A DNA stretch of 64,000 bases, taken from Pavona decussata. Lineage: Eukaryota. Position numbers and translations under genes: made by a program. Location of the stretch: positions 3,038,001 through 3,102,000 of the forward strand of contig CDRNST010000067.1 in the NCBI GenBank assembly GCA_977016875.1. The letters run 5' to 3'. Shown here piece after piece: positions 7,243 through 8,568 of the stretch. Position 1 is the stretch's first letter, and each line of letters opens with the position of its first letter. A model generated the notes under the pieces. The model was not told where the DNA came from, searched no databases, and worked only from the letters and a program-made list of their open reading frames with translations.

Positions 7243-8568
7243 GAGCTCCCGCAGGTGGCGAAATTGTTTGTACCTTCTTTTTGGTGTCCATCTTGTGGCT
7301 ATTCCAATGATTGTGATTTTCGATTCTGCCAACGCTGTGGTTACTCTCGCAAGACAGTGCGTGTTGGGTAGTCAGGTTTGGCTGATATTAATTTAGACGA
7401 AATTGATACTCGTTTGAACCAATTGTGGAATTTTGATCAAGCTACTAGCTATTCAAAACAAAAGGACTCTCTTCAAAAGGAATTGGAGAATTTTCTTTTG
7501 GGTCTGCCGGGTAAACCATCTCTGGCTATCGTTTCACCCCGCGATCTGGGTCGTTTCTTTGTGTTTAAGGATCGAGGTGGCAAAACTCAGGTGCATTGAA
7601 ATGGTTGTGCCTTTTTAGGGCAACGTGGTACTCATTCATGCGGATGTCAAGTGAGACTTTCATACAAGACTGTTGATTCTTACATTGGAAACTTCGTTCA
7701 ATCTTCCACGCAATTGGTTGGGATGGTGAATGGGACAGGTGTTTGAGTCTGGGGAATCCGGCGGCGGATAAATCGGTTAAGGACTATCTTCATTTTATAA
7801 CGGCAGAGCAGTTGAAGGCTAGGATTACGCCTAAACAGGCAACTCCGTTTTTTGTTGATAAGTTAACTCAGCTGTCCTTTCATCTCGACCAGAAACTAGC
7901 CTTAGAGGATTTGTCTCCAACACAGCGTTTTATTGTGGCCCGAGATCAGGCTTATTTTAAATGTGCTCTCTTTAGCGGTGACCGCCCAGGAGATTTAGGT
8001 CGTGTGAAAGTCCCAGAGATCTTGCGTTTTCCTAATGATGTTGGATTCCTTTTCAATCATGTCTGGGGAAAGACTTTAAGAGACGGTGATGAAAATGTTT
8101 TTGGTATCAGGAGAAGTCTTCAATTGGCGATCTGCCCGATTAAGGGGATTGAGCAGTACATGGCAGTGGCCCGAGACCTCAGAATTGATCTCACAACCGG
8201 CTATCTTTTCCGCCCTACTAATCCTCAGGGAGGCATTGTGGATTCCCCCTTTTCTTCAGCAAGCGCTGAAGCCCATCTCCGATGAGGGGGAGACGCTTCA
8301 TGGCTTTCGCTTGGGGTGCGCTATTACATTGGCGTTAACTGCTGCAGATTTATCGGAGATTGTGGATCATGTAGGATAGACTCGTCGGCATACTGCACTT
8401 TATCATCTCCAGTTAGCCAAGCTCATGAACCACTCTGGTGCCTCAGGAATGCTGGCGGCAACGGATTTAACGGAAGTTATAAATCCATGGCAGGATGTTA
8501 ACCAGGTAAAATGCTTTATTTGTGCTTTTCCTGTAAATCATTCTGACAAGCGTAATCTGTCAACTTGA
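7243..8568 (+). pseudogene. Zn-ribbon + ALOG-like domain + tyrosine recombinase
   Basis: CPSCG...CQRCG; FKDRGGKTQVH*NGCAFLG...CGC..RLSYKTVDSYIG..LRSIF...GNPAADKSVKDYL; catalytic-type GDRPGDL, GKT, HGFRLG, HVG. Confidence 0.85.

Follow-up and report, generated by a model that had tools for sequence, protein, structure and literature searches.

Tyrosine-recombinase (YR) retrotransposons with an ALOG domain were described in 2012 by Iyer and Aravind (PMC3537659), who called them "DIRS1-type" and found them in cnidarians, molluscs, echinoderms, Branchiostoma and Ectocarpus, with Nematostella, Acropora and Lottia among the named hosts. Their architecture consists of a Gag with a zinc knuckle, a reverse transcriptase (RT) with RNase H, an adenine methylase that is inactive, and a recombinase in which an N-terminal zinc ribbon, the ALOG domain and the catalytic domain follow one another; the animal copies were all reported to be inactivated. 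A second point of reference is the Pat1-like "echinoderm form" of the DIRS order (SpPat1), to which the excerpts of PMC4157794 and PMC3266345 used here attribute a methyltransferase (MT) domain, split direct repeats, a Gag with a zinc finger, a recombinase in the orientation of pol and, after that recombinase, internal repeats. According to the same excerpts this form is present in Lottia and Nematostella, in such a way that both kinds of element, the Pat1-like form and the ALOG elements of PMC3537659, have been reported from these two genera. In plants, the zinc ligands of the ALOG domain were defined on LSH3 as HxxxC...CxC, located in the loop between helices 2 and 3 (PMC10927535).

We analyzed a stretch of 64,000 nucleotides of the coral Pavona decussata (contig CDRNST010000067.1, positions 3,038,001 to 3,102,000), referred to below as the window. 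With a probability of roughly 93%, positions 7243-8568 of this window are a recombinase gene in decay, located at the 3' end of an old and broken Pat1-like (DIRS order) retrotransposon of the ALOG tyrosine-recombinase class. The Pat1-like label refers to the structure of the element only, and the excerpt of PMC4157794 warns that the structural features of DIRS-order groups are homoplasious. The features of the element are collected in Table 1.

Table 1. Features of the ALOG-class element in the window (window coordinates).
Feature	Position	Strand	Details
gag remainder, downstream of a foreign TIR-transposon insertion	4113..4520	+	paralogue homology from 4113; tblastn
Acceptor-like site, pyrimidine tract ending CAG	4811..4825	+	directly 5' of the first conserved pol codon (4826)
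pol (RT, RNase H-like, methyltransferase-like)	4826..6980	+	tblastn; Pfam RVT_1
Non-coding spacer, pol to recombinase	6981..7242	+	ends in pyrimidine tract + TAG, AG at 7241-7242
C4 zinc ribbon, N-terminal	7243..7368	+	Cys codons 7285, 7294, 7327, 7336; followed by TAG 7369-7371
ALOG domain	7438..7790	+	four-helix DNA-binding domain with inserted HC3 zinc knuckle; PF04852 in two collinear pieces
Tyrosine-recombinase (YR) catalytic domain	7791..8568	+	Phage_integrase on paralogues; Cre match of the whole-protein model
B1, internal copy of 3' split direct repeat	8719..8804	+	direct repeat with 9031-9116
A2, internal copy of 5' terminal repeat, TATA-like motif	8784..8950	+	paralogue comparison
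B2, terminal copy of 3' split direct repeat	9031..9116	+	direct repeat with B1

Six-frame translation of 7200-8600 gives a protein-like reading that hops between two frames and that runs, across the breaks, from the C4 zinc ribbon through the ALOG domain to a Cre-like tyrosine-recombinase domain. In the frame starting at 7243 a first CxxC lies at codons 7285-7296 and a second at 7327-7338, and the stop after the ribbon separates it from the ALOG domain. The segment FKDRGGKTQVH then leads to a TGA at 7597-7599, which interrupts the HxxxC of the ALOG knuckle, and continues as NGCAFLGQRGTHSCGCQVRLSYKTVDSYI (reading NGCAFLG...SCGC..RLSYKTVDSYI). After a one-base slip near 7688, the next frame is open for 198 codons, KLRSIF...GNPAADKSVKDYL, up to 8282, where a second frame change is followed by TAG 8377-8379 and by a tail reaching 8568. 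When the DNA is aligned with its two closest paralogues (on contigs C233 and C67, 89-95% identical), a gap of one base is seen near 7688 and, relative to these paralogues, one of 26 nt near 8278, the latter shifting the frame. The preliminary description had read the YR N-terminus in the same way (FKDRGGKTQVH, NGCAFLG, SCGC and LRSIF, preceded by a CxxC...CxxC ribbon), and our translation reproduced it; the damage that it mentioned, one stop and one frameshift, was too low a figure, since three stops and two frame shifts were counted. The catalytic R-K-HxxR-W-Y set is also incomplete. R, K and HxxR are kept, the TAG at 8377-8379 occupies the position of the catalytic Trp of the relatives, and the nucleophile Tyr, present in 121 of 126 relatives, is replaced by a His (8404-8406). 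The window copy is a dead YR member by descent, and its age is judged from these lesions and from an identity of 89-94% to the two nearest paralogues.

The ALOG domain was searched for with the Pfam profile ALOG_dom (PF04852). The piece 7378-7596 matched profile positions 10-62 (E 0.004, 17.7 bits) and the piece 7600-7698 matched positions 65-95 (E 0.014, 16.0 bits), collinear with the former. Each of them alone falls below the curated cut-off of 26.6 bits, because the stop splits the domain, and the firm ALOG scores come from paralogues, the window copy itself being sub-threshold. Five open paralogues from different subfamilies scored between 64.1 and 85.7 bits (E 1.9e-17 to 3.7e-24) and matched Phage_integrase as well. 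One open paralogue was aligned by phmmer to the ALOG domain of Arabidopsis LSH3 (8p5q) with an E of 7e-11, the alignment passing through GKT.VH...C...C.CP.R...D..IG.LR. An AlphaFold model was made for the same paralogue (pLDDT 77, from a 39-row alignment), and its helical domain superposes on 8p5q_A in Foldseek with a TM of 0.78, an rmsd of 2.3 Å and 32% identity. As judged from these comparisons, the resemblance of the window to the ALOG domain is far more than chance.

The four ligand codons of the knuckle are all present in the window (H 7594, C 7606, C 7639 and C 7645). To place them among relatives, an alignment of 126 sequences was used, composed of the window (its breaks filled with X), 24 distinct open frames from the genome and database relatives. 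In it the four ligand columns are occupied by H in 122, and by C in 117, 122 and 122 sequences, respectively. Three points of the preliminary description are borne out in this way: an ALOG profile match, expected at 7500-7800, lies over 7438-7692 in the two collinear Pfam pieces; the H/C/C/C ligands are conserved in intact copies (117-122 of 126); and the likeness to the ALOG consensus of the plant LSH1/G1 regulators is supported by Pfam and, through a paralogue, by the phmmer match to LSH3 and by the fold.

For the N-terminal ribbon, the first 42 residues of the window reading match Pfam DZR and zinc-ribbon families with E-values from 1e-4 to 1e-3, all below the cut-offs, and the four cysteines are kept in every relative of the 126-sequence alignment that has the N-terminus, as they are in the window. 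In the paralogue model, residues 12-35 form a small beta ribbon (pLDDT 80-85). The ribbon announced in the preliminary description is thus present, with two conserved CxxC pairs, and is not "extra", because an N-terminal zinc ribbon was already described for the class (PMC3537659). In the catalytic domain, the columns of the same alignment are occupied by K in 124, H in 126, R in 124, W in 121 and Y in 121 sequences, and the first catalytic Arg is invariant in the 39-row alignment. The corresponding residues of the paralogue are R249, K278, H363, R366, W389 and Y398, and the best overall structural match of its model is the Cre recombinase (E 1.6e-10).

This recombinase has many relatives. A protein search of the same genome with an open piece of 180 residues gave at least 151 matches, many of them with open frames of 400-467 residues. 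A word search of the databases gave 560 relatives with E below 1e-10, of which most already bear the tags PF04852 and PF00589. Porites lobata (72%), Oculina patagonica and Actinostola are the sources of the nearest named ones, which fits an anthozoan host.

The remaining parts of an element were found on the same strand upstream of the recombinase. The gag of a young sister family (see below) aligns by tblastn to window positions 4114-4455, and a CCHC zinc knuckle lies at about 4402-4446 (Pfam zf-CCHC, E 9.5e-5), the young-family gag being matched by zf-CCHC as well. The young-family pol, of 752 aa, aligns by tblastn to 4853-6971 in frames 2, 3, 2 and 3, that is, with at least three frame changes. 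Within the pol of the window, Pfam detects the RT at about 5481-5924 (RVT_1, E 4e-6) and, below threshold, an RNase H-like domain at about 6182-6440 (RT_RNaseH, E 0.06). A methyltransferase-like (MT-like) domain at about 6430-6978 was seen as a fold on a paralogue. The last 190 pol residues (the MT-like part) together with RNase H gave no Pfam match, even at E 10, and for the MT-like part a fold comparison was therefore used. The model of the paralogue (pLDDT 86) matches a cap adenosine-N6 methyltransferase (E 3e-5), KsgA/Dim1 and TaqI, and an Atlas feature search gave a lead to Dam. The conserved blocks of the pol C-terminus read DLM.LDSN, GVN.FAQ, PYVFPP and YWWP, with FPP at the place of the NPPY-type motif. 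A methylase-like domain of this kind is the mark of DIRS and PAT elements.

Downstream of the recombinase, B1 and B2 of the window are 87% identical across 86 nt (93% across 73 nt), and B2 likely marks where the element ends on the right. A2 has 91% identity to the sequence that the C233 paralogue carries just 5' of its leader ATG. The A1 repeat of the window copy was searched for and not found. The 5' part of this copy lies upstream, on contig C67 at 3031891-3034582, and gag is split by an insertion of around 7.5 kb that takes up window positions 1-4112 and extends upstream to position 3034583 of contig C67. The insertion has terminal inverted repeats of 46 nt starting with CAGTACTG and a TA duplication, and in the C233 paralogue its target site is uninterrupted. 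With this Tc1/mariner-like signature, it is a TIR DNA transposon. The claim that most of the architecture is retained is on the generous side: gag knuckle, RT, MT-like domain and YR are there and collinear, in a copy that is dead, with its gag split and its 5' terminal repeat missing.

Other features were observed in the window. Positions 300-1500, inside the inserted transposon, are densely occupied by direct and inverted repeats of 35-120 nt nested in one another; the arms 409-528 and 539-658, for example, show 93% complementarity. An AAT/ATT microsatellite at 10258-10620 has a flanking inverted repeat of 107 nt (10387-10493 and 10512-10618, 94% complementary). Open frames at 11199-11854 contain kinase catalytic-loop and DFG-like motifs (HQDIKSDN ... 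DFG) and probably represent a kinase gene, either its exons or a remnant. On the minus strand, two adjoining open frames at 12923-13419 look like the C-terminal portion of the reverse-transcriptase protein of a non-LTR (LINE) element.

The arrangement of the repeats is the basis for placing the element within the order. A strict DIRS1-like element, bounded by inverted terminal repeats and with an internal complementary region, would have in common with this one the RT, the MT-like domain and the tyrosine recombinase, and "DIRS1-type" is the name given to the class by Iyer and Aravind (PMC3537659). Repeat searches, however, found inverted terminal repeats neither in the full young-family copies nor around the window element; what they found were direct repeats in the order A1 ... 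B1-A2-B2, complete in the young family and with B1, A2 and B2 only in the window copy. This order is the defining difference of PAT elements in the excerpt of PMC4157794, and the recombinase is placed after pol without overlap, which makes the DIRS1-like structure very improbable. Since the terminal repeats are split direct and not inverted, the element is assigned as Pat1-like within the DIRS order, following the excerpt of PMC4157794. The earlier term "DIRS-type" can be kept for the order, as RT, YR and the MT-like domain belong to one element, and has to be dropped in its strict DIRS1 sense.

Split direct repeats are also carried by Ngaro elements, so that an even slimmer chance was considered, namely that this is an element with a recombinase of the Ngaro or Crypton type, or that a recombinase gene had landed beside an unrelated RT. 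Against this, the RVT_1 region and the YR share a strand, the whole gag-pol-YR stretch is collinear in three paralogous copies, all the parts lie within one pair of repeats in the young family, and an MT-like fold is present, whereas Ngaro elements are by definition devoid of MT (PMC3266345). A host gene for an animal ALOG-type DNA-binding protein, domesticated from an element as in plants, an origin raised for solo ALOG frames in Nematostella (PMC3537659), is hardly credible for a frame that is broken by a stop within its zinc knuckle and by a frame slip, belongs to a dead element and lacks a start codon of its own. The reading as an animal copy of the ALOG/DIRS lineage, already put forward in the preliminary description, is supported by the ALOG domain, YR, gag knuckle, RT and MT-like fold on one strand.

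The same genome contains a younger relative of this element. Around 45 loci (for instance L015-L030 and L041-L043) carry a recombinase frame of 444 residues that is 61% identical to that of the window, and four full copies share 99.1-99.4% identity across 6.7 kb. They are arranged as A1 (81 nt), a region of tandem repeats, gag, pol and recombinase, B1 (61 nt), A2, 139 nt of unique sequence and B2, with both A1 and A2, and both B1 and B2, 100% identical to each other. The frames are open in the copies examined, and contigs of likely RNA origin cover the element from end to end. These data suggest that the young family was recently active in an animal genome, and they bear on the 2012 statement that all the animal copies are inactivated (PMC3537659). 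It was also observed that both B repeats of this family end with AATAAA a few bases before the repeat end (L033, 7670-7687 and 7947-7964), and this could provide two alternative polyadenylation sites.

Contigs of four public runs were mapped on one young-family copy; judging by their size, three of these runs are probably RNA, with around 140 million letters against a genome of 602 Mb. In two of the likely-RNA runs (X1 and X7, from one sample and two studies) the contigs branch at position 2820 of this copy (L033, on contig C96), and the letters preceding the branch are those of 1467-1493 of the same locus. The junction removes 1496-2821, a GT-AG intron of 1326 nt that holds the tandem repeats of the element, and joins in frame to the gag body a leader exon with an ATG at 1346, 50 codons and phase 0. 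The joined leader-gag sequence is absent from the genome assembly, with 3 mismatches allowed, and it therefore stems from spliced RNA and does not reflect a variant in the DNA of this assembly. A real GT-AG intron is present in gag of the young family. The pattern of a leader-YR junction was likewise not found in the assembly, and the absence of both junctions from it indicates that it contains no retro-copied spliced form.

In the young family, none of the three frames (gag body, pol and recombinase) opens with ATG. Those of pol and recombinase each start directly after a pyrimidine tract and AG, in phase 0. The same acceptor-like arrangement at the start of pol was found in the window, in the young family and in L049, and the tract with AG before the first YR codon was found in the window (7228-7242) and in the 12 subfamilies tabulated (loci among L004-L053), among which the sequences upstream of the YR start cannot be aligned. 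One exception to this YR tract was seen, a decayed paralogue with the AG mutated. At these sites, in the window as well, neither pol nor the recombinase has an ATG of its own. The YR tract is also present in relatives from other species, where its translation opens the called proteins and gives a Gln (CAG) as the last residue. A matching leader (MADRPVQIP..., with a phase-0 GT donor) and a gag acceptor of the window's own subfamily lie upstream of the window.

From this arrangement we propose, with a likelihood somewhat short of an even chance, that gag body, pol and recombinase are all expressed by one leader exon spliced alternatively to three phase-0 acceptors. The leader would consist of an ATG and about 45-50 codons with a phase-0 end, and the use of the pol and recombinase acceptors is predicted from the conserved tract and AG. 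The run contigs, which drop rare forms, contain no junction to the pol or the recombinase acceptor, and the young family has no good phase-0 donor at the end of gag or pol. Such an expression would be a retrovirus-like subgenomic strategy.

The recombinase acceptor could also be reached from a donor at the end of pol, resulting in a pol-YR fusion. The window does have a phase-0 GT after codon 6966-6968, and NCBI gene models of Porites and Oculina, which may be predictions, join different pol-end donors to the same acceptor. However, no donor scoring above 4 of 9 exists at the matching place of the young family and no pol-YR junction appears in the run contigs, so a fusion is not supported. Separately, a 666-aa frame in L010 was considered as a processed, intron-less pol-YR copy and was rejected, since it reads through the spacer by chance and has the ribbon in another frame. 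Regarding splicing from a common leader to three acceptors, the literature searched, which excludes the reviews of Poulter and Goodwin 2005 and Poulter and Butler 2015, gave no case of a natural intron or of splicing for DIRS, PAT or Ngaro elements; only engineered reporter introns, in Dictyostelium DIRS-1, turned up.

By extension from the family, the element would be transcribed from the A repeat and then reverse-transcribed, the split repeats would let a closed circle form, and the recombinase would clamp the DNA between its ALOG and catalytic domains and integrate the circle. The window copy is capable of none of these steps, because its recombinase, pol and gag are broken and the nucleophile Tyr and A1 are gone.

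Taken as a single locus, this fossil copy of a class published in 2012 has little weight, and hundreds of animal proteins are already tagged with the ALOG and integrase families in the databases. It is useful as an entry point to the young, transcribed sister family and to the gag intron, and the parts that deserve more attention are the splicing model and the young family. If the three acceptors are indeed used, some of the "stops and frame shifts" behind the 2012 calls of dead copies would be introns. Should splicing give access to the recombinase as well, the element would use a mode of expression that is unusual among retrotransposons, and this would serve as a practical warning for the annotation of such elements.

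We compared the recombinase with its closest structural relatives. With phage P1 Cre it has in common the two-domain clamp architecture, and HxxR, Trp and Tyr align; Cre has neither the zinc knuckle nor the N-terminal ribbon, and the sequence identity is about 17%. With plant LSH3 (8p5q; PMC10927535) it shares the four-helix bundle and the HxxxC...CxC knuckle between helices 2 and 3. Whereas the plant ALOG factors are DNA-binding domains that stand alone, followed by a nuclear-localisation tail and lacking a catalytic domain (PMC10927535), here the ALOG domain is the core-binding domain of a recombinase.

At the level of the whole element, the SpPat1-type elements of Szitenberg et al. 2014 (excerpt of PMC4157794) show in common with this one the MT-like domain, the Gag zinc finger, a YR co-oriented with pol and split direct repeats whose internal pair follows the recombinase, and that excerpt makes no mention of an ALOG domain for Pat1-like elements. 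The ALOG elements of PMC3537659 have the same gene set and order, a methylase-like domain without the usual catalytic motif, and many copies in a marine invertebrate genome. In Ectocarpus these elements have terminal direct repeats of 159 bp (PMC3537659), whereas here the repeats are split, A1 ... B1-A2-B2, with B of 61-86 nt and A of 81-167 nt. The class is already published, its N-terminal ribbon included, and the locus is an ordinary member of it; unlike the animal copies of PMC3537659, the genome that harbors it also has a 99%-identical family with open frames in the copies examined and with transcripts.
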